Of a DNA stretch of 64,000 nucleotides, positions 6,191-61,077 are shown piece by piece. A program made the position numbers and the translations under genes. Source of the stretch: Octopus sinensis (taxonomy: Eukaryota); contig NC_042999.1 in assembly GCF_006345805.1 (NCBI RefSeq), forward strand, positions 120,590,001 to 120,654,000, in the 5' to 3' direction. How positions within the stretch are numbered: position 1 is the stretch's first letter; every line of letters begins with the position of its first letter. The notes beneath the pieces are model-generated. The model did not search any database, had not been told where the DNA came from, and saw only the letters and a program-made list of their open reading frames with translations.

Positions 6191-6953
6191 GTGTATAATG
6201 GCAGAAAAAGTGTGATTTACATAAATCACAAGATTCACATAAATCGGACCAAGAATAGCGTATGTCGATGTCGAACAATGGATCACTGATATACTGACAT
6301 TACTGCTACAAAATCTGTTAGTCCAGTTGTCTTCTGTCCAGGATGGAATATATATGCCACGGAGGCCAGGAGACTAGCACTTTCGAGACAAGCACTTTCA
6401 ATCTGTATGAAATATATAGACATATGTTTGTGTGTGTGTTTGTGTTTGTATGTGCGTTCGTATGTGTGTTTGTGTGCGTATGTATTTATGTGTGCATATA
6501 TATGACCCAGGAACATTCTTAAACTCAAAGAAAGAACTTTTTAGCCGGTGCTTTTACCTTAAATGTGCCCTCCTACAAGCTTAGAAACCCCTCCCCCCAC
6601 CAGGTGTTTGATTAAAAAAAACGAAAAGAACACAAGCATCTTAGAATATTGTCGCCGGCGAAGGTGATGTAGAGGATGTATTCCAGTATCGCATATGGAG
6701 AACCAAGCTCGAACTTTGTGTGTATTCATATATAGTTTTCTATATATAGTTTACTATGGAACCTTGGGGCTCTCTGTCTCTATTTAATGAAAGGCGGTAT
6801 GTGTCACCAGAGATTTGAGTCAGAAGCGTCGCCTATTCATCTTAGCGATTGATGGGTTCGAAGGTTCGAAAGCAATCACTCTCTGACTAACCATAATAAC
6901 CAAACTTAATAATAAATAATTAAGTATTTTGTTTATTTTCGTAAACCTTCCCG

Positions 6954-7007
<54 letters not shown>

Positions 7008-7084
7008 GTATATATATGAGGGTGTAATACGTATGTATATTTGTAAGCGTAATTTTGATTTGGATGTTCCATTGGTTAAAGGTG

Positions 7085-7102
7085 TTTCCAATTCTATTTC
7101 AG
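7085..7102 (+). other. 3' splice acceptor ahead of the peptide-gene coding exon
   Basis: Pyrimidine tract plus cag (ttctatttcag). The AG lies exactly 24 nt before the ATG in all three copies (7101-02, 34673-74, 52802-03), implying an upstream non-coding exon. Confidence 0.65.
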
Positions 7103-7126
7103 ATATCTTTCTCCAAGTGATAAACG

Positions 7127-7303
7127 ATGAATTCCAAAATAATCTTCTTCTGTCTGCTTGTTGCAGCCACACAAGTATATTCTATTAACAATGAGGAAAT
7201 ATGCTTTGGAAGATGCTTAGCTTGTTATCAAGTGAGCTCAATGTATTGTGTAATGGACATAAAGAGACCAACAAGCGTTGAAGGTTGCATTAAGTACGTA
7301 TAG
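7127..7303 (+). CDS. Small secreted cysteine-rich peptide, copy 1 (58 aa)
   Basis: MNSKIIFFCLLVAATQVYSINNEEICFGRCLACYQVSSMYCVMDIKRPTSVEGCIKYV*. Hydrophobic signal-like N-terminus, 5 Cys in the putative mature part; frame, length and stop conserved in two paralogues. Confidence 0.85.
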   Translation: MNSKIIFFCLLVAATQVYSINNEEICFGRCLACYQVSSMYCVMDIKRPTSVEGCIKYV

Positions 7304-7326
7304 CGTTTTGAATGGAAATTCACCTC

Positions 7327-7332
7327 ATTAAA
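7327..7332 (+). terminator. Candidate polyadenylation signal ATTAAA
   Basis: Lies 24 nt after the stop and is conserved in the paralogues (34899-34904, 53043-53048). Confidence 0.5.
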
Positions 7333-7479
7333 AATACCTGTATTCATTAATATTAAAATATCATTCATAATTTAGGTTTAACGTAATTGATACACGCACA
7401 CACGCATGCACACACAGACACACACACACACACATATATATATAATCCATAATATCGTACAAACAAGTACGTAAATTAT

Positions 7480-9860
7480 TTACATTTGTCCTCATCTTGT
7501 TTGTTGAATGTGGAACCTGGGTTCTCATTCCTAAGGTATTTTTCGATGTTATCATTATCATAATAATGCTTGGAATCGAACTCGGCATCTTGGGGTTAGT
7601 AGTCCATGCTCTTAACCATTGCGCTATATGCCCGTGGACAATTATGAATTGAATTTTAGGGCTTATACGAGGGGCGTTCAATAAGTAATGCCCCTGACCC
7701 ATTTCCCATAGCAGTAGAGCAACGGCACTTGGCACAGTTATTAGTCTTTTCCTACATAGGAACTACCCAGAGTTATGCATTTCTCCCATCGTTTGATACA
7801 GCTCTGGAGACTGTTTTTGTAGAAGAACCCAGCTTGGTCCTCCAACCACGACGTGACTTCAGAAATCAAGGCTGCATCAACTGGGAAACGCTTTCCTTTC
7901 AAAATCAACTTCATGGCTGGGAAGAGGTGAAAATCAGAGGGTGCAAGGGGAGGAGTTCATAGCTGCACGCCTGTGCTTCTGGTCTGGCGACACGCGAGTT
8001 GTGGACCGGAGCGTTGTCCTGCAGGAGGAGGATGCCTTTGCTGATCTTTCCCCGCCTCTTGATTTTGATAGCATCTCTTAATTTCCTCAAAAGTGAAGCA
8101 TAATAGGCTCCTGTAATTGTGGTACCCTTTGCCAGGAAATCTGTCATCACTACTCCGTCCTGGTCCCAGAAGACTGTGAGCATAACCTTGTCAGCGGAGG
8201 GCTGCACCCTTGCCTTCTTTGGAGGAGGTGAGTCACGGTGCTTTTACTGCATTGACTGGTCTTTGGTCTATGGATCATAGTAATGGACCCAGGTTTTATC
8301 CTGAGTGATCAGTCTTTTGAAAAATTTTGACTCATCTTCTTGGCACATCTCCAAATTCATCCTCGAGCACTCAACGCGTTCTTGCTTCTGGAAAGGTGTG
8401 AGCAACCTGGAAATCCATCTGGCAGACACCTTTTGCATATGCAAATGGTCATGAATGATAGTTTCCACAAACCCGGTACTAATCTTGACCTTATGGGCTA
8501 TTTGGCGAATAGTTATGCGTTGACCTTCCAAAATGGCACCCTCAACTTGACGGACAGACGTCTCATCAACGGCAGAAGGGGGCGACCAGATCTGGGAGCT
8601 GTTTCCACAGAGTTCCGACTATGTTTGAATTCACAATGCCAGCGTTTTACAAGGTCATATGATGGGGCATCATCACCATAAGTTACTTTCATTTCATCAA
8701 AAGTCTCCCGTGGTGTGCGTCCTTTCAAATACAAAAACCAGATCACTGCTCGACACTCAACAGGCTCCATTTCACACTTGACTCAGTTCAAACACCTGTA
8801 AATCAGAAACCACAATTACAGAGCTGTAATTCGCCACTTAATCTATAGAGGTATAAATAAGTGCACATGCAAAATTTCAGCTAGATCAAACAACTGCAAG
8901 TGGGTCAGGGGCATTACTTATTGAACGCCCTTCGTAAATTTAATATTTTTCTATCCTTCCTTAATACTGGTTCCCATATGCTGCTCATATCTCACTCGGT
9001 CTCCTTAGGAGGTTGTTGTGTCCTGGCATATGTGCTGCTTCTTTTAGTTTTCGTATTTTCCAGTGGTGTTCTCTGTCTGTTATTTTAACTTCATCCCACT
9101 GGGGGGAGGTAGTCTCCATTTTCCATACATGATCAGCTATACCCGACTTTTCAATATCTCCTCGTGTCACAGCTTTGCGATGTTCGTCTACCCTTATTTT
9201 GAGGGGACGGTATGTTTCGCCTTTGTATAACCTACCACAGCTGCATGGGATGGAGTACATGCAGTCTTTGGTCATATTATCTTCTATTGGTGTTTTTACT
9301 CGGAAATATTTGCGAATTGCTGTATTACTCTAGAATACTGTCCTGATGTTATATGGGCCGCACATCTTTTGTATCTTTTTGGAGGGGCCTTTCACATGGG
9401 GTAGACATACTGTGGACAGTTTATTGGCCTCATCCTCTCTCTTCTTCATAATTAGAGCGGATAGTATACTTTTGAGGTAGTTGTTGCTTAACAGATCATT
9501 ATTGAGCTTGATCATTTCTTCGTGGTGTGTTTCAGGATCACTACTTATATTCTTTCCACGATGTTTTAGGCACTGAGAAATCCCTCTCTTTACACTGTAT
9601 GGATAGTGGGAATTGAAGTTGAGGTATAGTCCAGTAAATGTCGGCTTGTGGTATACGGATGTTCTGAATCCATACTTGGTGCGTTTTATTAATACGTAGG
9701 CATGCCAGCTGATTGCCATCAACATATAGGTGTCATCAACATATCGTAGCCATGTTGTTGGCTTTAGTGGTGTTGATCCTAAAACCAAACTCTCAAAGTA
9801 TTCCATGTATATATTGCCTATTACCGGTGATAATGGCGAACCCATAGCAAAACCCTCTGA
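7480..9860 (-). mobile_element. Penelope-like retroelement (RT plus GIY-YIG), 5'-truncated, interrupted by a mariner
   Basis: RT motifs MGSPLSPVIGNIYME and WLRYVDDT (9330-9845); GIY-YIG MYSIPCSCGRLYKGETYRPLKIRVDEH (8985-9275); terminal region with tRNA-like A/B boxes at ~7570-7625. Confidence 0.9.
7668..8934 (-). mobile_element. Mariner DNA transposon, 1267 bp, frameshifted transposase
   Basis: TIRs cgaggggcgttcaataagtaatgcccctgaccc / gggtcaggggcattacttattgaacgcccttcg; TA TSD at 7666-67 and 8935-36; motifs KVSARWISRLL, ITQDKTWVHYYDP, KVMLTVFWD, LLQDNAPVH across three ORF pieces. Confidence 0.95.
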
Positions 9861-12748: not shown

Positions 12749-12868
12749 CTTCTGTGTTCCGGAAGCTCGAAAAATTATCAGTGGTATAGAAAGCTGCAAG
12801 ACCGACGCAAACAAGTTAAAATGCGTCGATGCAATAGTACGCCAGAATTGAAATTCCTGAAAATATAG
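12749..12868 (+). CDS. Candidate 120-nt exon encoding a Cys-bearing C-terminal segment (unit 1); upstream exon not identified
   Basis: cag acceptor at 12747-48 and AG|GTAATA donor at 12868. Phase-2 frame FCVPEARKIISGIESCKTDANKLKCVDAIVRQN* (stop 12849-51). Same sites, length and three Cys at 60958-61077. Confidence 0.5.
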   Translation, partial: LLCSGSSKNYQWYRKLQDRRKQVKMRRCNSTPELKFLKI

Positions 12869-16335: not shown

Positions 16336-16361
<26 letters not shown>

Positions 16362-16369
<8 letters not shown>

Positions 16370-17482
16370 ATTAGGGCTTAGTAAAATAAATTACTTGCCA
16401 CATACTGAACTTAGTAGAAATAGCAGCCCAAAAAATTTTTTTAGCCATTTCTACTACTTAAAGAAAATTTCTCTCAGATAATGCTTACTCCGACAGCTCA
16501 CGAAGGTTTGGAGGTAAATACAGAAAAATATCACAAGTACATAGATCGTTTGAGTACGTCAACGTTTCAAGGTTAGCCAAATAAAATCAGCATTTCTTTC
16601 GTCAGCTCAAAATTTCTTAATTTGGATTTGGAAACACTAAAAAGAAGGAACTTTACCTATCAACGAACTTGTCGCTTCAGATGAACCACTCCAACTAACA
16701 GTATCAACAAATTCAAAATGCGCAGGCGTAAATCTCTGCACTCCCCTTCCACCCACGTGGTCTATCCAGCAAACATTATATTTTAACCGCGAGAACCGAG
16801 GCAGTATGACCGAGAGAAATGAATTATAATATCAACAATTGAGGGTAAAATTAATTAATTAATCAATTTCACCAAGTGTTCAGTATGTAAAAGGACCATT
16901 TAAGGCGAATTCAAAATATTACATTATATAATTAAGGCTTAGTAAAATAAATTACTTTGCCACATACTGAACTTAGTAGAAATAGCAGCCAAAAAAAAAT
17001 TTTTTTAGCCATTTCTACTACTTAAAGAAAATTTCTCTCAGATAATGCTTACTCCAGACAGCTCACGAAGGTTTGGAGGTAAATACAGAAAAATATCACA
17101 AGTACATAGATCGTTTGAGTACGTCAACGTTTCAAGGTTAGCCAAATAAAATCAGCATTTCTTTCGTCAGCTCAAAATTTCTTAATTTGGATTTGGAAAC
17201 ACTAAAATGAAGGAACTTTACCTATCAACGAACTTGTCGCTTCAGATGAACCACTCCAACTAACAGTATCAACAAATTCAAAATGCGCAGGCGTAAATCT
17301 CTGCACTCCCCTTCCACCCACGTGGTCTATCCAGCAAACATTATATTTTAACCGCGAGAACCGAGGCAGTATGACCGAGAGAAATGAATTATAATATCAA
17401 CAATTGAGGGTAAAATTAATTAATTAATCAATTTCACCAAGTGTTCAGTATGTAAAAGGACCATTTAAGGCGAATTCAAAAT
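16362..17482. repeat. Two near-identical tandem copies of a ~561 bp dispersed repeat
   Basis: ttagggcttagtaaaataaattact at 16371 recurs at 16932. Confidence 0.9.
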
Positions 17483-17680
17483 AATTAATTGTTATCGCCA
17501 TATTAATATGGCATTCTTATAGATATAAGAATAATCGCTGCCGCTGGTCAGCTCCATGAGGCCACCGCCTTAAGATAGCTATTGATACACGATCTGTATC
17601 CATTATAACCTTCGAACAGCGGCAGCGATTATTCTTATATCTATAAGAATGCCATATTAATATGACGATAACAATTAATT
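17483..17680. mobile_element. MITE-like element with ~60 bp terminal inverted repeats
   Basis: aattaattgttatcgccatattaatatggcattcttatagatataagaataatcgctgccgctg is mirrored at 17620-17680 around a non-repetitive core. Confidence 0.65.
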
Positions 17681-19629: not shown

Positions 19630-19858
19630 AATTCAATCATAGTTATATTGAGATTCAAAAAACTTACCAACTCGTAGGTTCTTATCGGAAATCTCCTTTA
19701 TCAGGTGTGAATGCCAGAAGACATAGAATGGCTCTACAATCCCACAAAACTTTAAAGTGTCAAGATTCCAGCCCAGATATTATTGAATGATATATTTAGG
19801 TTAAACCAAATCCGGTGAGTGCCACTTTTGTTTGTTTATGCACTCATTTGCGTGTGTG

Positions 19859-19863
<5 letters not shown>

Positions 19864-19938
<75 letters not shown>

Positions 19939-19958
19939 TAATAATAATAATAATAATA

Positions 19959-20000
<42 letters not shown>
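19864..20000. repeat. (TAA)n microsatellite, 5' flank of the LINE
   Basis: Direct reading; one of many microsatellites in the window. Confidence 0.95.
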
Positions 20001-20001
<1 letters not shown>

Positions 20002-23000
20002 CCACCGATACTATTCAACCCAAGAATAACAATCGAGCGGTACGTACATTAAACCTACAACAAAAAATGTACGAAAAACTACACGTGCGAAATAATGTGA
20101 CAACAGAAATAAACGGACCAGTACCCTACGAAAATGACGATCGTCAAAATAATGGGCCGGACGTTGTACCTCATGTCCCGCAAATAAAACCCAAAAGACG
20201 TAAATGGACACGTGAGGAATACATTTCTATCTTACACGCATACTTCACAGCAGTACTCTACCCAAAAAATGAAAATACAACAACACATACATATAAAATA
20301 TGGAAGGAAAATAATAGATATTTAGACTTGGATACAGCAATGAACCCTAATAAATTAGCTAACGTACGAAGATACATTCTCAACACAAACAAAATATCAG
20401 AAATAGAAATAGAACACATAAAAGAAAACATACACCAGGAAAATGTAGATAGAAGCCACACAACAATGCCCAATAATATAAACACTGAAACTGTAAAACA
20501 CGAAGACAAATGCAACATTCCCAACAAACACGATGTAAACAACGAAGGGGAGCCTAATGATTATGATAATATAAAAAATAAAATAATCAAAGAACTAAAA
20601 ACCACAGAGCTCAAAATGGACCACCGACCATACCTCCCAAGAATAAAAATAAACGCAATAACAACACCAATTATAAACAACATAAACCTAGCCGTCACTG
20701 AACTAGCCACTGAAACAAAAAAAAGTGATATCACTGAACTAAATGACTTGATATACGCAGCAGCCACTGCAGCCACAAAAGAAGCTGGATACTCAACCAA
20801 ACCCGCCCAAACAGGAGTACCACCACCCAAACAAACCCTGTGGATAAATAACATCCAAAACAAAATTTAAAAAATTAGAAAAGACCTGTCGATTCTTAAT
20901 GAAATCAGCAAACAAGCAACGCTACTGAGCAACAAAAAGAGAACAAAAATGCTCTGCAAATATAACACCACAGAAAAAGATTTGCCGGAGATAAAAGAAA
21001 AGCTGAAGCAAGATATCCTTGCCAAAGCTCAAAGGATCCGCCGGTACGAGGAACGCCAACGCTTCTTTGAACAGAACAAAAAGTTCAACTCCGACCCCAA
21101 AAAGTTCTACCAAGAACTGGGCAAAAATAAAATAGAAGTCACTGCAGCACCAACGGCAGAAGAATTGGAAGAATTCTGGGGAGAAATATGGCCGGCGAAC
21201 GAACCACCAAAAAAAAGGAGTATCAAAATAACAAACTCGGCATCTGAACAAACTTGGACCCCCATAACAACTGAAGAGGTCACCCAGGCACTGCAAAGAC
21301 TAAGCAACTGGAAGGCACCTGGGCATGACAAGATCCCCAACTTCTGGTTGAAATATCTAACAGGAATGCACAAAAAGCTGGCTGAAAACTTTAACAACGT
21401 ACTAGCAGAGCCAGAGACAATGCCTGAATGGCTCACGAAGGGGAAAACCATCTTAATTCCCAAATCAAATGAAACAGAAAAACCAGAAAACTACAGACCA
21501 ATAACCTGCCTCCCTACTATGTTCAAGGCATTTACTGCAGTGATATCACAAAGGCTGAACAAGCACCTGGACGAAACCAAACTGTTCCCAGAAGAGCAGA
21601 AAGGATGCCGCAAAGGCTCATATGGCTGTAAAGATCAACTAATGATTAATAAAGCCATAACTGAAGACAGCCAGAGAAAGAAGAAAGGCCTCAGTATGGC
21701 CTGGATTGACTACAAAAGGCGTTTGATAGCATCCCCCACACATGGATCCTCGAAACACTAGCACCAACAATCATCAAATTGATAGAGCACTCTATGAATA
21801 AATGGCAAACAGTCCTACACCTCCAAACAAAAGAGGGACTCATGAAAACCAAAGACATCCCCATTAGAAGAGGAATATTCCAGGGAGATACGCTCTCTCC
21901 ACTCCTTTTCTGCTTGGCACTGTCACCTCTATCTGATATGCTAAATAGAATTGGATGCGGATATAAATGTTACGGCAAAACGATCAGCCACCTTTTATAT
22001 ATGGATGACCTAAAACTATACGCTGCAAATGACAAACAGCTGGAAACACTATTAAAGACAGTTCATGGATTTACCAAAGAAATAGATATGAAATTTGGAT
22101 TAGAAAAATGCGCCAAAGTAACCATGAAAAGAGGAAAACTAGTTAAGAGTAACAACATCACACTAGATGAAGCAAATGAAATAAAAGAATTAGACCAAAG
22201 CCAAACTTACAAATACTTAGGAATCCATGAACTAGATAAGACACAACACACACAAATGAAAGAGAAAATAAAAAAAGAATATTATAGACGAGTTAGATCA
22301 ATACTAAACACAGAGCTCAATGCTAAAAACAAGATAATAGGTATCAACACTTTAGCTGTCTCAGTTATAAGTTACAGCTACAATATCCTTAACTGGACAC
22401 GAAATGACTGACCAAAATAGACAGGAAAACAAGAAAAATAATGACAGGATCTTGGATGCATCACCAAAAATCTGACATAGAAAGACTATATATACAACGT
22501 ATAGAAGGTGGTAGAGGCCTTATACAGCTGGAAAACTACTATAAAATAACCACCATAGGACTGCAAAAATATCTACTTCAGAAGGAAGGAAAACTGATCC
22601 AGATAGCGGCAAAACACGAGCAAAACAAAAAACTGTTCTCAGTATTTAAGGAAGCTGACAAATACAAACAAGAAATCATACCACCTAATAAATATGAAAA
22701 AGAAGGAGATGAAGAAGATGAAGAAACAACAAAAGCTATAAAAAAATGAAATCCAAACTAAAAATAGAACAGCAACGAACCATGATAAAACGATGGCAAG
22801 AAAAACCCCTTCATGGTAAATACTGGACTAAACTAAACGCAAAAGAAATAGACAAAGAAAAATCCCAGCAATGGTTGAGAAGCTCAGGACTCAAAGCAGA
22901 AGCAGAGGGATTTTTAATTGCAGCACAAGACCAAAGCCTCCCCACCAGAAATTACCAAAAACATGTAATGAAAAGAAATATTACAAGTAACTGCAGAATA

Positions 23001-23661
23001 TGTGGAGATGGACAAGAAACAATAAATCATATTATCTCTAGCTGCCCAGTCCTGGCTAAGAAGGAATATATTCACAGACATGACAGAGTTGGAACTTACA
23101 TACATTGGAAGCTATGCCAACATTATGGAATAACAACAGAAAAAAGATGGTATAGGCACACACCAGAAAAGGTCACAGAAAACGAGAAAGCAACCATACT
23201 CTGGGATATGCCGATACACACAGATAGAGAAATTAAGGCCAACAGACCAGATATAGTTGTCAGAGACCATGAAGAAAAAAAATGCTTTCTAATTGATGTA
23301 TCAGTACCGGCAGATGACAACGTGTCTCTAAAAGAAATGGAGAAACTCTCAAAATACAAAGACCTGGAAATAGAGGTAACCAGAATGTGGAATCTGAAAA
23401 CAGAAACAATTCCTATCATAGTAGGTGCATTAGGCATGATAAAAAAATATTCAGACAAATACATAACAAAAACACCAGGACTTACAAACACATATAACAT
23501 ACAGAAAATTGCACTACTAGGCACTGCACACATCCTACGCAGAACACTTTCCATACAATAACCATCAGAGCATCACAACAAATCACAGCACATACCCAAG
23601 GCACACAGAGCTGCGCTCGGTAGTGAAGTGAAAGCACGCTATAAAAATAAAAATAAAACTA

Positions 23662-23975: not shown

Positions 23976-24249
23976 ATAATAATAATAAAAGTGACTACAA
24001 AAGAATGGAACCTCGATAATAGATAAATAGAATGGAACCTCGATAATAGTTAAATAGAGGATTATTTACGTATATTCTAATTTTAAACAAACAGTAAGTT
24101 GTCATTATAGTACTCGGTGTTTCGAACGGTAGAGTGATGAGCTAACATGCATTCTCGTTGGCTGTTAATGGCAACTCCGATTACTATAATGACAACATAC
24201 TGTTTCTTCTAAGTTACAACACACACACACATATATATATATATTTATA

Positions 24250-26245
24250 TAAAAATGGTAAATAATTTTCCTGTGGATTTTCATGTAACCAACAATTATT
24301 TACCGGTAAACTTCGGTATGTAAATACGACAAATTAATTGTCAGGACCTTTGTAAGGTTCAGTATATAGTAAAGAAAGAAAATAAGGTGGGTGGCTGCAG
24401 TAGGCTGTTTCACCTCATACCGAAGGAATTAGAAATGGCAGTCAAAGACCGTTTTTTCCATTTTATAAGTGGAGATTCCAAAAACGAAGAGGCCCTTACG
24501 GCTCACATACACAAAATCGGAGTGGCAAATATACGAAGGCTCACTTACCGTTAATAGCGAACACCGTGTTTCTGGATCACAAACATATAAAAAAAAGGGA
24601 GTTTGAATTCCGTCGTCAGCGCTATTTCGATAGCTTTACCAATGCCACCAGCCCTCACTTCTGACCCAGCGACATCAGATAGTGGGGGGAAGTGCGCAGA
24701 TGTTAAAACCAAGTAACGACTGGGAACGTAATTTTCCCTCCAAAATTCTGCCATGCGCGCCTTGGGTAATCGTAATGGAATGAGGAATCCACATGGTAAT
24801 GCAATAAAAATGGTAATAATTTTCTGTGGTTTTTCATGTAACCAACAATTATTTACCGGTAAACTTCGGTATGTAAATACGACAAATTAATTGTCAGGAC
24901 CTTTGTAAGGTTCAGTATATAGTAAAGAAAGAAAATAAGGTGGCTAGCAGTAGGCTGTTTCACCTCATACCGAAGGAATTAGAAATGGCGTCGAGACCGT
25001 TTTTCCATTTCTATAAGTGGAGATTCCAAAAACGAAGGCCCTTACGGCTCACATACAAAATCGAGTGGCAAATATACGAAGGCAGTCACTTACCGTAATA
25101 GCGAACACCGTGTTTCTGGATCACAAACATATAAAAAAAAGGGAGTTTGAATTCCGTCGTCAGCGCTATATTCGATAGCTTTACCAAATGCCACCAGCCC
25201 TCACTTCTGACCCAGCGACATCAGATAGGGGGGAAGTGCGCAGATGTTAAAACCAAGTAACGATGGAACGTAAATTTTCCCTCCAAAATTCTGCCATGCG
25301 CGCCTTCTGGGTAATCGTAATGGAATGAGGAATCCACATGGTAATGCAATAAAAATGGTAAATAATTTTCCTGTGGTTTTTCATGTAACCAACAATTATT
25401 TACCGGTAAACTTCGGTATGTAAATACGACAAATTAATTGTCAGGACCTTTGTAAGGTTCAGTATATAGTAAAGAAAGAAAATAAGGTCAGAAGTGAGGG
25501 CTGGTGGCATTTGGTAAAACTATCGAATATAGCGCTGACGACGGAATTCAAACTCCCTTTTTTTATATGTTTGTGATCCAGAAACACGGTGTTCGCTATT
25601 AACGGTAAGTGACTGCCTTCGTATATTTGCCACTCCGATTTTGTGTATGTGAGCCGTAAGGGCATTCGTTTTTGGAATCTCCACTTATAGAAATGGAAAA
25701 AACGGTCTTTGACTGCCATTTCTAATTCCTTCGGTATGAGGTGAAACAGCCTACTGCTAGCCACCTTATTTTCTTTCTTTACTATATACTGAACCTTACA
25801 AAGGTCCTGACAATTAATTTGTCGTATTTACATACCGAAGTTTACCGGTAAATAATTGTTGGTTACATGAAAAACCACAGGAAAATTATTTACCATTTTT
25901 ATTGCATTACCATGTGGATTCCTCATTCCATTACGATTACCCAGAAGGCGCGCATGGCAGAATTTTGGAGGGAAAATTTACGTTCCCAGTCGTTACTTGG
26001 TTTTAACATCTGCGCACTTCCCCCCACTATCTGATGTCGCTGGGTCAGAAGTGAGGGCTGGTGGCATTTGGTAAAGCTATCGAATATAGCGCTGACGACG
26101 GAATTCAAACTCCCTTTTTTTATATGTTTGTGATCCAGAAACACGGTGTTCGCTATTAACGGTAAGTGACTGCCTTCGTATATTTGCCACTCCGATTTTG
26201 TGTATGTGAGCCGTAAGGGCCTTCGTTTTTGGAATCTCCACTTAT
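24250..26245. repeat. ~550 bp unit repeated ~2.25 times in tandem, then ~1.5 times inverted
   Basis: Unit starts at 24251, 24807 and 25351; abrupt strand switch at ~25487; bounded by (TA)n. Confidence 0.9.
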
Positions 26246-26280
26246 ATATATTTACATATATATATATATATGTATGTATG

Positions 26281-32345: not shown

Positions 32346-32652
32346 AGCATATATGTATATAACGCACACACACACGTACACCTATATATATATCTTCAGT
32401 GAATCATAGATCCGAAAGAGAAGCATACTCCACAATTTTGAGCAGTAGAGTAAATGGATAAAGAAAGATATGGCCGGTCTTACACTGGGTTTCACATCCA
32501 TAAGTGCTTACTTTATGGCGTTTCTAAAGACCTCTCTAACAAGTGACGTTTTAAGGTCTGAAGAAACGCTGTAATGCTAAGCGCTTAATGGATGTGAAAG
32601 TGTAAACCCTTAGACTGTCCATATCTATCTTTATCCATATACACACACGTAT

Positions 32653-34616
<1,964 letters not shown>

Positions 34617-34698: not shown

Positions 34699-34875
34699 AT
34701 GAATTCCAAAATCATCTTCTCCTGTCTACTTGTTGCAGTCACACAAGTATATCCTATTGACACTAATGTAATATGATTCGGAACATGCTTAGCTTGTTAT
34801 CAAGTGAGCTCTGTTTATTGTCCATTGGATAAAAAGAGTCCACAATGCATTGAAGGTTACTTTGAGTATGTATAG
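34699..34875 (+). pseudogene. Cys-rich peptide copy 2 with premature stop
   Basis: MNSKIIFSCLLVAVTQVYPIDTNVI*FGTCLACYQVSSVYCPLDKKSPQCIEGYFEYV*. Same 177 nt as copy 1; TGC>TGA at the first mature Cys (34774-76); last Cys changed to Tyr. Confidence 0.85.
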
Positions 34876-37625: not shown

Positions 37626-37694
37626 TTTCTGTGGTTTGGAATTTGGAAATATTATCAGAGGTGTAGATAAATGCACAACCAGCGCAGGCAAGAC
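37626..37694 (+). pseudogene. Truncated paralogue of the 120-nt candidate exon
   Basis: Acceptor AG at 37624-25; FCGLEFGNIIRGVDKCTTSAGK, then a deletion that joins to sequence homologous to ~13310. Confidence 0.45.
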
Positions 37695-39310
37695 TATCAG
37701 TGTTATTCAGTTGTTTATACAACATTATTTATGAGCTATAGTTAAAACCTATATCTCAGAAGGGAAAATATATATTAATCGTTTAACAAAATTGCAATGC
37801 CTTGTGTAATATTTTATATTCTTGGATTGAATATGCACTGTCTAGGAAATACTTTGGATAATCTTACCCCTGTCACGTATGAATACAAATTAACTTCCAA
37901 CTGGCATTATTTGATGTCCTGTAGTGCTTGTATTCAGTTATATGTCACGAACGAACAATTAATTTGTATATAAAACGATGCAATGTTTCGTGTTAAATCA
38001 TTAATTTATATATCGTTTGCTTATTTTACAGATTCCTTTGTCACTCAATATAGTGCAAGCCACGATTAAACGATTAATAAACCGCAACGTATAAAATGCA
38101 GTGTGTTTTTTTATGTAGACTTTCAAAGTTTTTATAATACTTTCAAATGTTTTCATAACCTTAACGTAAGAGTGCAGAATGTACATTAAAAACGCTGTAT
38201 AGTTAAGTTGGTTTATCCAATTTAACTACGGTAACGTCCGACATGTATGTCGAGGTAGTATATAGTGTAAACTTGTGTAAACATACAAATATAGTCACTA
38301 TCATTCCTGGTACCACTGCTCACTACAATAAATTTTCTATCATCAAAAGTGCTCGTAGTGTATAAACTATGAAACCTTTTTAGCTATAATTTCTCGTCTG
38401 AAATATTCGATTTGTACGACGAAAGTATGGTAATTTTGGATGTCTGATTAGAAGTGTTAAATTATCCTGGTGCACTTTACTCTTTACTAGTTTTTGCCAT
38501 ATTCATTTCAAAACTGCTTAACAGAATCCCAGTTCAGAAAAGAATTGTAATCACTAAAAAATTATGTCTATGAGAAAATCATTAGTAAAAAAATATAAAT
38601 AAAACGTGAAGACATGAATAGCTTTGAAGTTTATTTCACGTTGATTTGCTTATTATTCACGTCAATATGCTCATTTTGTATAAATCTTTCCCCAGACTCT
38701 CCGTAGAACATCGTACTAGAGTGCTTTACGCTTAGAAAAGTTACTAAAACTACCATGCTAGCATGATTAGTATGGATACTAAAGATATTCGTTATGTGAA
38801 AACATTCACAGAGTTGTGTCCCGGCATTTACACACACACACGCACGCATACGCACACACACACACACGCACACACACATACGCACACACACACACACACT
38901 CACACACACGCATATGTATATATGAGTGAAAAAGAAAGGGACAGAGAGAGGCGGCTAGACGGAAAGAGATAAAGGAATTCGAAAATCTATTGGTTGCATG
39001 TTGCATGCAAGGCCTTTGCGTGAATAACAATTTTATGTAAAGAACCAAGAGTTTTCCTTTTATTAAACGAAAGCGTGCTCCTGCGTAAAAAAAATCAGCA
39101 TGTGGAAGAATTTTATATTTTAACTTTTACAAATATATATACAATTAATGCTGGATATTACTTGCTTACAAGAGGTGGTGCGAAGTAAGTGTGTGTTTGT
39201 ATATATACAAATCCTAAATTTTTCTCGGGAATATTGCAGAGTTAAGCATGCCTGTATGTATGCATTTACATATACAAACAGATATAATATATATATATAT
39301 AATATATATA

Positions 39311-39452: not shown

Positions 39453-41523
39453 TCAAGGCAACTGTAGATTTGGCCCAAGCGGCACCAACAACAAGGGACG
39501 CTGTGCTTTTTTCCATTCTACCTTATGCCGTAGACTTGTTAAGGGCACCTGTCCATATGGTATAACGGGAAAAAACTGCCCTCACCTCCACCCCAAATAC
39601 TGTCCTAAATACAGAGTCCATCGTCCTGATCCCAAATATGGATGCACAAAAGGCAATGGATGCACCTTCTTCCATCCTAAACTGTGCCAAACTTCTGTGT
39701 CACTAAGGATGTGCCTGAACCCAGAATGCAACCACCACCATCTGAAGGGCACAAAACGATCACAAAATAAATATAAACAGCAACAGAGGAGATCTACGAC
39801 AACAACAAAAACAAAATACAACCACGTTTCCCCTCCTACAATCAAACAACGAAGACAGAACCATGAAAAAACCATAACACCAAATAACATAAACATGAAA
39901 TATGTATCCTCTGACCAAGTGGCAAACCAAAGAGGCAACTCTTTTTTACTGACTTACCTAGAAAATATGAAGGCCGACCTAAGCCAGGAGATCCAACGAG
40001 CTATCAGCAACCACCTATGCAAATCACAAGGACCACACACCCACTACAAGAAAATCATACACACACAGCTCCATACAAGAACTACTCACATTGTTACCAC
40101 TGAACAACATAAAACAGCTTAGAACAATGCAAACATCAAACTTCCCTTACCTCGACATTCCTGTTAAATGTACGTGGCATCAACCCATCAATTATTGCCC
40201 AAAAATGGAAGATCCCACATATAGAGAGTTGGCTTGCCGAAACGGCACATTGCTTCCCTTTCTTTATCCTTACCGAGACTCACCTGAACAACACCCATAT
40301 GGACGCCGAGGTGAGAATAAAAGATTTCACCATTGTTCGTGCGGATCGCACAGACCGAAATAAGGGAGGAACAGCCATCTTTATCCATGACTCCTTTTCA
40401 CTTGATGCCAAGGACATATTTTCCAATGTCTATTGTGAATCTGTATCACTATTCAGCAAGTCCAAGGACATAATCATTGTTGGTCTTTACATGCCTCCCC
40501 AAGCACCTCTAAAGTGCTTTGAAGAGTGCCTTAGCAAAGTCAAGTCCTTCTTTCGGAAGTACAACTCCGGAATCATACTAGTGATGGGTGATTTTAACCT
40601 CCCTCATGGGAACTGGCCTACAAATACTCTGAAGTTTGGTAAATGCTCTACATCAGATAGAGCAGCAGCAGCAGAACTGCTCTTTAATCTAATGGATGAA
40701 TACTTCCTGACTCAGCTAGTGCTCGAACCAACGAGACAGAATAAAACGATCTTGGATCTGGTATTGACCAATCACTCTAGCTTCGTTCACAGTATTTCAG
40801 TTGAAAAAAACTCTCCTCTCAGACCACGACATGGTACTCTGCAATTTTAATTCCCGATATATAAAAACCAAACCAGCCAATCCCACTCCATGGCACTCAT
40901 TTGACAACATAAACTTCCACAAAGCGGACTAGGGAGCAATCAGACTGGTCTTTTACTCTCAATTCCACCCATATTGAGACCGCTTGGCAGCACTTTTAAA
41001 ACATTGTCACCTATACATGTTCTAAACACGCTCCCACGAAATCTACAAACACAAACAGAAACCGGCTCCCTAAAAAGAAAAAAAACACTCATCAGGCGCA
41101 TCAAAAGACTCATTAAAATATTCCCACATACAACATCCACAGTCAACAACAATGAAAAGGCTAGAGCTGGAAAAACTTCATCTGCGGACCAACATGAAAA
41201 CCTCCATTGAAAATCAAAGAGCTGTGGAGGAACAGTGGGTAATCAAAAACATCAAACAGAACCCAAAAGTGTTCTATTCTTATGCAAATAAGCATAGAAC
41301 CACTGTCTCACCCATTGGGCCATTGTTTAATGATAACGGCATTCCCCAACACGATGCTAAAGAAATGGCAGAAATACTGCAGAAACAATACTGCTCTGTC
41401 TTTAGTGTTCCCACTGATATTGACGTAAGAGAAGCGAACGAAGTTGACTCCCAACATAAAATCTCAGACATAACCTTCACTGCCACTGACATCATAGCAG
41501 CAATAAATGAGGTCAATACTACT
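39452..41523 (+). mobile_element. CR1/L2-type LINE, 5' part (Cys/His ORF1, APE endonuclease), 3'-truncated
   Basis: CPYGITGKNCPHLHPKYC...CTFFHPKLC-type fingers; TETHL, RADR..NKGGTAI, MGDFNLP, LDLVLTN; later QNPKVFYSYAN linker. Frameshifted. Confidence 0.85.
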
Positions 41524-42420
41524 CTGCTGACTGGGATAGAAACTGTTTCGGTATATAATCTGCGTCTAACGAATTTCTCCAGAGGTTGGTCAGAGGGGCT
41601 GCAAGTTGGTGTCTACATTCCTTCAGGAGACTAGCGGGGAATCTATCATGGCCTACAGCAGTGTAGTATTTGACCTCATTTATTGCTGCTATGATGTCAG
41701 TGGCAGTGAAGTTTATGTCTGAGATTTTATGTTGGGAGTCAACTTCGTTCGCTTCTCTTACGTCAATATCAGTAGAGAGACTAGTTTCAGAGAGCGCAAC
41801 TACATCAAGGAAATATTTCTTAAGCTCACGTGCAATAAATGCAGTACGCCTTTCTGGCCACTTGTTGAAATTATCATCAAGAAGTGTGCGCACATTCCAA
41901 CAACCAAAATTCAAAGGATGTTTATTTTTACTTTTGCTTGAAGATTGTTTTATCACAGTGGCAGAATGACTACCGGGTCCAGTCTATGATACACTGGGAC
42001 ACCTGCAGAGCCAGAACTGTTCACGTGACGTTCCCAAGCCATTTTTTGCCATTTGAGACATTTTAGAGTAAGTTACAAGTGCATTTTTAGATTTCTGCCA
42101 ACCAACTAATTCAATGGTTTTACTAAGATTTGGAGTACAGTAAGTACCTGTGCAGATGAATAATTTTCAGTGGATGTAGCTTGCACTGCACTACCACCAT
42201 ATATTGGCCCAAGGAGACTTTCACCGGTGTGACATGAAAATTGACAAAACCAGGAACTTCCAAGGCCTCAGGTTATTTCGGAGATTTCCTTCTCCTAGAC
42301 AGATTGTTAACCAAGGTTAAAGAGCTTCTACCTACACGTTTTGTAAGCTATCACATTCCACAAATCAAACCGACATTCAAACTCTCTACAAAGTGACCAA
42401 ATATCACTCCGGTGACCGAC
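41519..42420 (-). mobile_element. RTE-type LINE 5' fragment fused to an inverted piece of the adjacent CR1-type element
   Basis: FGCWNVRTLLD...PERRTAFIARELKKY...ALSET (RTE endonuclease start) joins STDIDVREANEV..., the reverse copy of 41410-41520, extended by TAVGHDRFPASLLKEC. Confidence 0.8.
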
Positions 42421-52827: not shown

Positions 52828-53019
52828 ATGAATTTCAAAATCATCTTCTTTTGTCTGCTTGTTGCAGTCACACAAATACAATCCGTACAAATATATGCCG
52901 TTGATAATAATGCAAGATGCTTTGGAAAGTGCTTAGCTTGTTATGAAGTGAGCCCAATGTTTTGTCCAGGTAAAATAGAGAGACCAGAAAGCGTTGAAGA
53001 TTGCTTTGAGTACGTATAG
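52828..53019 (+). CDS. Small secreted cysteine-rich peptide, copy 3 (63 aa)
   Basis: MNFKIIFFCLLVAVTQIQSVQIYAVDNNARCFGKCLACYEVSPMFCPGKIERPESVEDCFEYV*. Intact; acceptor and ATTAAA conserved. Confidence 0.88.
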   Translation: MNFKIIFFCLLVAVTQIQSVQIYAVDNNARCFGKCLACYEVSPMFCPGKIERPESVEDCFEYV

Positions 53020-60957: not shown

Positions 60958-61077
60958 TTTCTGTGGTTTGGGATATGGAAAAATTATATGTGATATCAAA
61001 AAATGCAAGACCAAAACAAACAAGATAGGCTGTGTCAATGCAGTAATAAACTAGAATGGCAATTCCAGACAATATAG
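60958..61077 (+). CDS. Candidate 120-nt Cys-bearing exon (unit 3)
   Basis: tag acceptor at 60956-57 and AG|GTAATA donor; FCGLGYGKIICDIKKCKTKTNKIGCVNAVIN* (stop 61052-54). Confidence 0.5.

Follow-up and report, generated by a model that had tools for sequence, protein, structure and literature searches.

Has the mature part of a small secreted octopus protein been shaped by positive selection, or has it merely drifted on a fixed scaffold? The question arises from a short open reading frame at positions 7127-7303 of a 64-kb stretch of octopus genomic DNA (the window, the whole stretch analysed here), which reads MNSKIIFFCLLVAATQVYSINNEEICFGRCLACYQVSSMYCVMDIKRPTSVEGCIKYV followed by a stop codon (the copy 1 read-through product, 58 aa), and from two further copies of the same gene in the window, at 34699 and 52828. 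An earlier note had aligned copies 1 and 3 by hand over 33 codons, from the first mature Cys to the last codon, had counted 12 replacement codons and no silent change, and had suggested an arms-race molecule.

The count itself was reproduced. Region 7202-7300 differs from 52918-53016 of copy 3 by 12 amino acids (R/K, Q/E, S/P, Y/F, V/P, M/G, D/K, K/E, T/E, G/D, I/F and K/E), the 21 unchanged codons are identical in the two copies and carry no silent change, the five Cys codons (TGC, TGC, TGT, TGT, TGC) are the same, and a recount of signal codons 1 to 16 again gave two silent and two replacement changes. The 12:0 count is real, yet it is no proof of positive selection and cannot alone make this an arms-race molecule. 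We consider it probable that the window holds a lineage-restricted tandem family of secreted proteins on a disulfide scaffold, in which copies 1 and 3 are live, copy 2 is dead, and the mature residues evolve at a near-neutral rate.

Gene structure of the three copies

The peptide does not end at 7303, because a conserved splice donor precedes the stop codon, the homologue continues beyond this point, and second exons are present in the window. A GT donor at 7294 (AA followed by GTACGTATAG, 7292-7303) is kept in all three copies. The Octopus bimaculoides homologue P0001 matches copy 1 up to ..VEGCIK and then runs on with FCDPEARNIISGIEKCKTAANKIDCVDAIIH, and tblastn with P0001 finds a matching second exon downstream of each of the three copies. 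The limits first assigned to the peptide were therefore wrong. The last three "codons" and the stop of the open reading frame are a split codon plus intron, and the count of five Cys is therefore a truncation artefact. Only 30 of the 33 codons compared are true whole codons (7202-7291), with 7292-7293 being the first two bases of the split codon, and the twelfth replacement, K/E, is really this split codon, AA plus C (Asn) in copy 1 versus GA plus T (Asp) in copy 3. The region of the earlier note (7202-7303, plus strand) thus consists of 30 codons, two split-codon bases and the intron start GTACGTATAG (7294-7303) with an in-frame TAG. The splicing of this first coding exon (exon A) to the second is what the gene model of P0001 and the conserved signals suggest. 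At present the main value of the analysis is corrective, in that the model has two exons and eight Cys and is not a 58-aa peptide with five Cys.

All features of the gene lie on the plus strand. In copy 1, a conserved non-coding block (7046-7126) lies upstream of the ATG and contains an acceptor-like TTCTATTTCAG, ending at 7102 and possibly used as such, which is followed by about 24 nt of 5' UTR. The first coding exon (7127-7293) encodes the signal peptide MNSKIIFFCLLVAATQVYS, the residues INNEEI and the first five mature Cys, ends in phase 2 (..ATT AA) and is 77% identical to P0001. The conserved 5' end of the intron (7294-7400) comprises the donor and about 100 nt with ATTAAA motifs, and its divergence between copies 1 and 3 is p=0.062 versus a background of 0.175-0.21. 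The second coding exon (12749-12851) begins after the acceptor ..acatttcag with a C, encodes (N)FCVPEARKIISGIESCKTDANKLKCVDAIVRQN and ends with a TGA stop; P0001 finds it by tblastn at 77% identity (E=5e-12).

Copy 3 has the same layout. Its first coding exon (52828-53009) carries an in-frame insertion of 15 nt (QIQSV) in the signal peptide, and its second (60958-61054) begins after the acceptor ..ttattgtag with a T, encodes (D)FCGLGYGKIICDIKKCKTKTNKIGCVNAVIN with one extra Cys, which makes nine, and ends with a TAG stop. The QIQSV insertion, at about 52873-52887 in the c-region of the signal peptide, is flanked by a direct repeat, ACAAATA, which suggests a slippage duplication. The spliced frames of copies 1 (89 aa) and 3 (92 aa) are both open and contain eight aligned Cys each, in addition to the ninth in copy 3.

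Copy 2 is a pseudogene, as its first coding exon (34699-34865) has a TGA (34774-34776) at the first mature Cys and a Tyr in place of the fifth, and as its second exon, of which a remnant is left at about 37626-37694, has a degraded acceptor (..aatataag, then T) and is cut off, homology ending after codon 83 with loss of the last Cys. A new Cys is found elsewhere in its first exon, and the self-alignment breaks at 37681-37701. Being dead, copy 2 therefore serves as an internal neutral control. If our reading holds, intact and dead copies within one array offer a clean natural comparison of constraint with neutrality.

Self-comparison of the window shows three collinear duplicated units, at roughly 3.1-14.9, 30.4-39.3 and 43.9-63.1 kb, which are 70-80% identical (BLAST) and are interrupted by microsatellites and transposons. 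The three paralogous units, of roughly 10-19 kb each, form a tandem array, and the gene within each has two coding exons separated by a phase-2 intron of 2.7-8 kb and is predicted to encode a pre-protein of about 90 aa (about 89-92). In the mechanism that we propose, the array would have evolved by birth and death, that is by tandem duplication and loss, leaving copies 1 and 3 functional and copy 2 a pseudogene.

Replacement and silent changes in the mature region

True diversifying selection is the most likely alternative to near-neutral change of the mature residues. The mature protein would then face a partner that evolves along with it, for instance a gamete or pheromone receptor or a target in prey or pathogens, and its replacements would be fixed faster than neutral changes. 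We regard this as a possibility of some weight, although one to be held tentatively. It agrees with the point estimates of omega, which exceed one in every analysis. By the Nei-Gojobori method (NG86), copies 1 and 3 have Nd 15.5/73.5 and Sd 1.5/16.5 over the 30 true codons (omega 2.6), and dN 0.326 and dS 0.202 over the 62 codons of the whole mature region (omega 1.6). Maximum likelihood estimates range from 2.2 to 5.8: the pairwise analysis (GY94/F3x4) gave 5.8 for the 30 codons (likelihood ratio test, P=0.068) and 2.8 for the mature 62 (P=0.047), and a three-copy star tree gave, for the intact branches, 4.6 over codons 31-60 (P=0.13) and 2.2 over codons 31-83 (P=0.17). The pseudogene branch of this tree has an omega of 0.75-1.4, as expected for neutral decay.

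However, none of these tests convincingly rejects omega=1. The P values run from 0.047 to 0.29 by test and partition, one-sided Fisher tests between copies 1 and 3 giving 0.29 for the 30 true codons and 0.18 for the mature 62, and they are not decisive. Several partitions were examined, which weakens the nominal P=0.047, and no test survives a modest correction for them; moreover, only two intact sequences enter the comparison. The interpretation given in the earlier note is borne out in part: the conserved signal peptide, the invariant Cys, the highly variable mature residues and the omega estimates above one are all there, whereas a convincing rejection of omega=1 is not.

In mature exon A no unambiguous silent change is seen in the intact copies, as against two to three in the pseudogene, which favours diversifying selection. 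The second exon, compared between copies 1 and 3, has three codons with silent changes only and about 17 replaced codons. The signal peptide is conserved, with pN 0.09 and pS 0.24, and pN in the mature region is 0.21-0.32. Under an exact neutral model, set at the local non-coding divergence with the Cys kept and stops excluded, the probability of finding no silent-only codon is 0.05-0.06, and it rises to 0.09 on condition that at least 11 codons are replaced; the 12:0 count is only marginally beyond chance. Many of the replacements alter charge and several codons differ at two or three bases, as diversifying selection would lead one to expect, but where such multi-base differences cluster (codons 47-49 and 64-68), each cluster may have arisen in a single complex event. 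At codons 64-68 (12756-12770 in copy 1, 37633-37647 in copy 2 and 60965-60979 in copy 3), copy 1 and O. bimaculoides read (V/D)PEAR and copies 2 and 3 read GL(E/G)(F/Y)G, with seven clustered base differences between the two groups. This cluster may represent one complex mutation or a small conversion and not independent substitutions.

Comparison with non-coding DNA has the advantage of a large reference and is therefore more informative than these tests. Between units 1 and 3, aligned non-coding blocks show 0.175 differences per site when taken from BLAST (6,419 sites) and 0.209 in three-way MAFFT blocks (2,253 sites). Set against this reference, the 30-codon region in which the signature had been seen is unremarkable, with 17 of its 90 bases differing, which places it at the 42nd percentile of 90-nt non-coding windows. 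The second exon, where 29 of 96 bases differ, falls in the top 2.8% of such windows (binomial P 0.0016-0.02 by background) and speaks for diversifying selection; its last nine codons differ at 10 of 27 bases. For the whole mature region the figures are 46 of 186 bases and the top 6.7% of windows, with P=0.008 against a background of 0.175 and 0.12 against 0.209.

In the three-copy comparison the non-coding background has a star-like shape, with 0.084-0.096 changes per site on each branch, and it provides an expectation for each of them. Mature exon A has accumulated 5, 10 and 9 changes in copies 1, 2 and 3, where 8.2, 7.7 and 8.9 are expected, and codons 31-83 have accumulated 14, 19 and 17, where 14.3, 13.3 and 15.3 are expected. 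As these counts are close to expectation, the intact genes change here at the neutral total rate and the pseudogene does likewise, its divergence being the same or higher, which tells against diversifying selection. For codons 31-83 the two intact branches together carry 31 changes against 29.6 expected from introns, and the replacement rate is therefore capped at roughly 1-1.6 times neutral. With about 78% of sites being replacement sites, an omega of 2.8 would give about 2.4 times the neutral total, which is not seen. The high dN/dS reflects the scarcity of silent changes in what is a very small sample and not an excess of replacements, with the last nine codons of the second exon perhaps excepted. 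At the same time, some residues are clearly constrained, and a total at the neutral rate implies that the free residues change somewhat above neutral.

Positive selection is not established by these results: the divergence equals the non-coding background, the pseudogene is equally diverged, and the peptide on which the claim was based is cut off in the intron. The arms-race reading is possible, and the data fit equally well with near-neutral drift of the non-structural residues around a disulfide scaffold. In the mechanism proposed here, the 12:0 count would be a small-sample view of a near-neutral regime, taken on a peptide cut off by intron read-through. Selection would hold the signal peptide, the Cys scaffold, the motifs CFGxCLACYxVS, RPxSVE, CKTxxNK and CVxA and the splice-adjacent sequences, and purifying selection would also act on expression or splicing elements. 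The other mature residues would change roughly at, or slightly above, the neutral rate, possibly under mild diversifying selection. A stronger version, to which we give somewhat less credence than to diversifying selection as such, is that of an undescribed, octopus-restricted family of secreted helical proteins with four disulfides which truly diversifies, most strongly in the second exon, and acts on other organisms or on gametes as an effector (in venom or saliva, as an antimicrobial or as a chemical signal), with the conserved 100 nt at the intron start controlling expression or a short isoform.

Constraint on copies 1 and 3

Whatever the regime of the mature residues, copies 1 and 3 are clearly functional. 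All eight Cys are kept on both intact branches (16 Cys-by-branch combinations, P about 0.02 at the neutral branch length), and the pseudogene has lost two of seven. The non-coding flanks of the first coding exon carry the same contrast between live and dead copies. In the 81 nt upstream, branch-specific changes number 4 in copy 1, 3 in copy 3 and 8 in copy 2, with a background of about 7.5, and in the intron-start block (7294-7400) they number 3 in copy 1, 2 in copy 3 and 8 in copy 2. Taking both flanks together, the intact copies have 12 changes versus 33.5 expected (Poisson P=1.8e-5), while the pseudogene branch has 16 versus 15.1 expected, which is the neutral rate. Blocks 7046-7126 and 7294-7400 and their copy 3 matches thus change about three times more slowly than neutral, and they do so in the intact copies only. 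This provides direct evidence for a function of both non-coding blocks in a live gene and for their release from constraint in the dead copy. The array has in this way already shown about 180 nt of non-coding DNA around the first coding exon to be under selection. The two blocks are likely to act in splicing or expression, or to form an alternative 3' end with its ATTAAA motifs. RNA editing or double-stranded RNA was also considered as a cause both of the conservation at the intron start and of the lack of silent changes; it was rejected, as the fold is no stabler than that of shuffled sequence (z=+0.87) and the consensus structure shows little covariation.

The strong conservation of the first 100 or so intron nucleotides in the intact copies, with their ATTAAA motifs, would also suit a real 58-aa isoform, made by retention of the intron or by polyadenylation inside it, with five mature Cys and an end in ..KYV. 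The in-frame TAG eight bases past the donor, kept in all three copies, fits such a product as well, although this TAG is part of the donor consensus region. Secreted disulfide peptides do not usually have an odd number of Cys, the gene model of O. bimaculoides has a splice at the donor, and in both intact copies the second exon still has an open frame with three aligned Cys. We consider the isoform improbable.

It is more doubtful still that all copies are decaying relics, with frames and Cys kept by chance at a locus that is neutral throughout. One could point to a mature divergence equal to the background and to that of an obvious pseudogene, to the odd ninth Cys and signal-peptide insertion of copy 3, and to the absence of any recorded gene call for either intact copy. 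However, the full retention of Cys just described goes together with frames that have stayed intact after about 0.2 substitutions per site, pN is below pS in the signal peptide, the flanks are slowed in copies 1 and 3 and not in copy 2, and O. bimaculoides has an intact homologue with the same eight Cys and the same exon junction.

Least likely of all is gene conversion that homogenised the exon and its flanks, so that silent sites and flanks look young and replacements are left by selection or by patchy conversion: the absence of silent differences in 7202-7303 would fit, as would a 370-bp core whose flanks differ little (p=0.06-0.10) and whose centre differs more (p=0.18), but silent divergence over exon A as a whole (5.5/32.2=0.17) is at the background level, the non-coding branch lengths are star-like and equal (0.084-0.096), the low flank divergence is missing on the pseudogene branch, which fits constraint instead, and a tract across both flanks would have erased the central differences too.

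The protein, its relatives and its surroundings

The predicted mature proteins have 68-70 aa, 7.5-7.8 kDa and a pI of 6.7-8.1, and their Cys are spaced C-x3-C-x2-C-x7-C-x12-C-x3-C-x13-C-x8-C (3-2-7-12-3-13-8). The N-terminus has a basic residue, a hydrophobic core with a mean Kyte-Doolittle value of 3.3-3.5 and small residues at -3 and -1, features from which we infer a signal peptide and a secreted protein. The product would then consist of a classical signal peptide and, behind it, a mature secreted protein (about 7.5-7.8 kDa) with presumably four disulfides and a predicted helical fold. AlphaFold2, run on a five-row alignment, returned helices at low confidence (pLDDT 48, pTM 0.30). A conserved signal combined with a variable mature part is usually read as pointing to an extracellular role toward other organisms or gametes, and such a role (in defence, venom, pheromone signalling or reproduction) may apply here, judging from the sequence pattern.

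For remote searches, P0001 was aligned with the exact exon translations from the window. The only relative found in 5.8 billion clustered proteins and 1.84 billion representatives was O. bimaculoides A0A0L8IBT9 (UniRef; this is P0001, 87 aa), with E=5e-21 for the single sequence and 8e-48 for the profile. Its identity is 76-77% with copy 1 and 55% with copy 3, and it shares their signal peptide. Its Cys spacing is identical to that of copy 1, copy 3 having the same eight and one extra, and its exon junction appears to be that of the window copies, in phase 2 after ..GC(I/F) plus AA/GA (..GCI(K/N/D)). As it is not identical to any window copy, it is either the copy 1 orthologue in another species or a further paralogue. 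Pfam searches with copy 1, copy 3 and P0001 matched no family at E<=10. Literature searches on A0A0L8IBT9, on the peptide strings and on octopus cysteine-rich secreted families found nothing, A0A0L8IBT9 is absent from two octopus proteome supplements, and an exact look-up of the copy 1 and copy 3 read-through products and of P0001 in an assembly index had none on record. The family is an uncharacterised orphan, with no homologues found outside Octopus and no known domain. If upheld, it would extend the short list of gene families confined to cephalopods by a lineage-specific secreted disulfide scaffold.

In its general plan the family resembles molluscan families whose mature peptide is hypervariable, such as MgCRP-I and the conotoxin superfamilies, which likewise combine a conserved signal and conserved flanking non-coding DNA with an invariant Cys scaffold and variable inter-Cys residues, and which form multi-copy birth-and-death loci. 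A signal far more conserved than the mature peptide, a conotoxin-like trait, is found here too (pN 0.09 vs 0.21-0.32). This pattern, a conserved signal and conserved flanks around a variable mature region as in known fast-evolving secreted peptide families, is a further point in favour of diversifying selection. However, the octopus family shares neither sequence similarity nor exon layout with these superfamilies: it has eight Cys in about 70 aa, is predicted to be helical, and carries the signal and half of the mature protein in one exon.

The attractin pheromone family of Aplysia (PF08037) likewise comprises small secreted mollusc proteins with disulfides and a helical fold, and its motif IEECKTS resembles the GIE(K/S)CKT of the octopus family. 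Membership in the attractin family was rejected, as no Pfam match was found at E<=10 and the number and spacing of the Cys differ. A profile search of the PDB gave one weak match to a human lysozyme mutant (chain 1qsw_A, E=0.085), in which 42 residues with three Cys are aligned; no other lysozyme chain in the PDB set matched at E<=10, and the match is taken as chance. C-type lysozyme and alpha-lactalbumin (PF00062) were rejected as relatives on an hhalign probability of 1.6%, the lack of a Pfam Lys match and the absence of the catalytic region.

The window is AT-rich (about 34% GC) and abounds in eukaryotic repeats, among them a mariner element, non-LTR reverse transcriptases and endonuclease fragments; it contains no Rfam family and no tRNA. 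Each copy has a conserved core of 370 bp, with (TA)n and (CA)n/(TA)n microsatellites on either side whose positions agree among the three units (6950-7010 and 7395-7445 in copy 1, and correspondingly in the other two). The copy 1 intron contains, about 370 bp from its start, a degenerate mariner/Mos1-type transposon (7666-8936, minus strand) with 39-nt terminal inverted repeats and a Pfam HTH_48 match (E=5.7e-9) on 8579-8770 of the minus strand. A non-LTR retrotransposon at 19815-23561 (plus strand) has RVT_1 and zf-RVT open reading frames and, at its 5' end, a long run of poly-Asn codons. The strong AT skew at 20-24 kb is due to this element, whose closest protein matches are 91% (a Logan run) and 80% (GCA_024449705.1) identical. 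Between units 2 and 3, an endonuclease-reverse transcriptase retroelement fragment (Exo_endo_phos_2) occupies 40299-41634 of the plus strand. Directly upstream of copy 2 lies a tandem duplication of about 1 kb (32621-33663 and 33603-34612, 95.5% identity) that is much younger than the gene triplication. Finally, a 565-bp tandem repeat at 16354-17483 (98.4% identity) and nested direct and inverted repeats at 24249-26246 (95-99% identity) are probably recent transposon copies.
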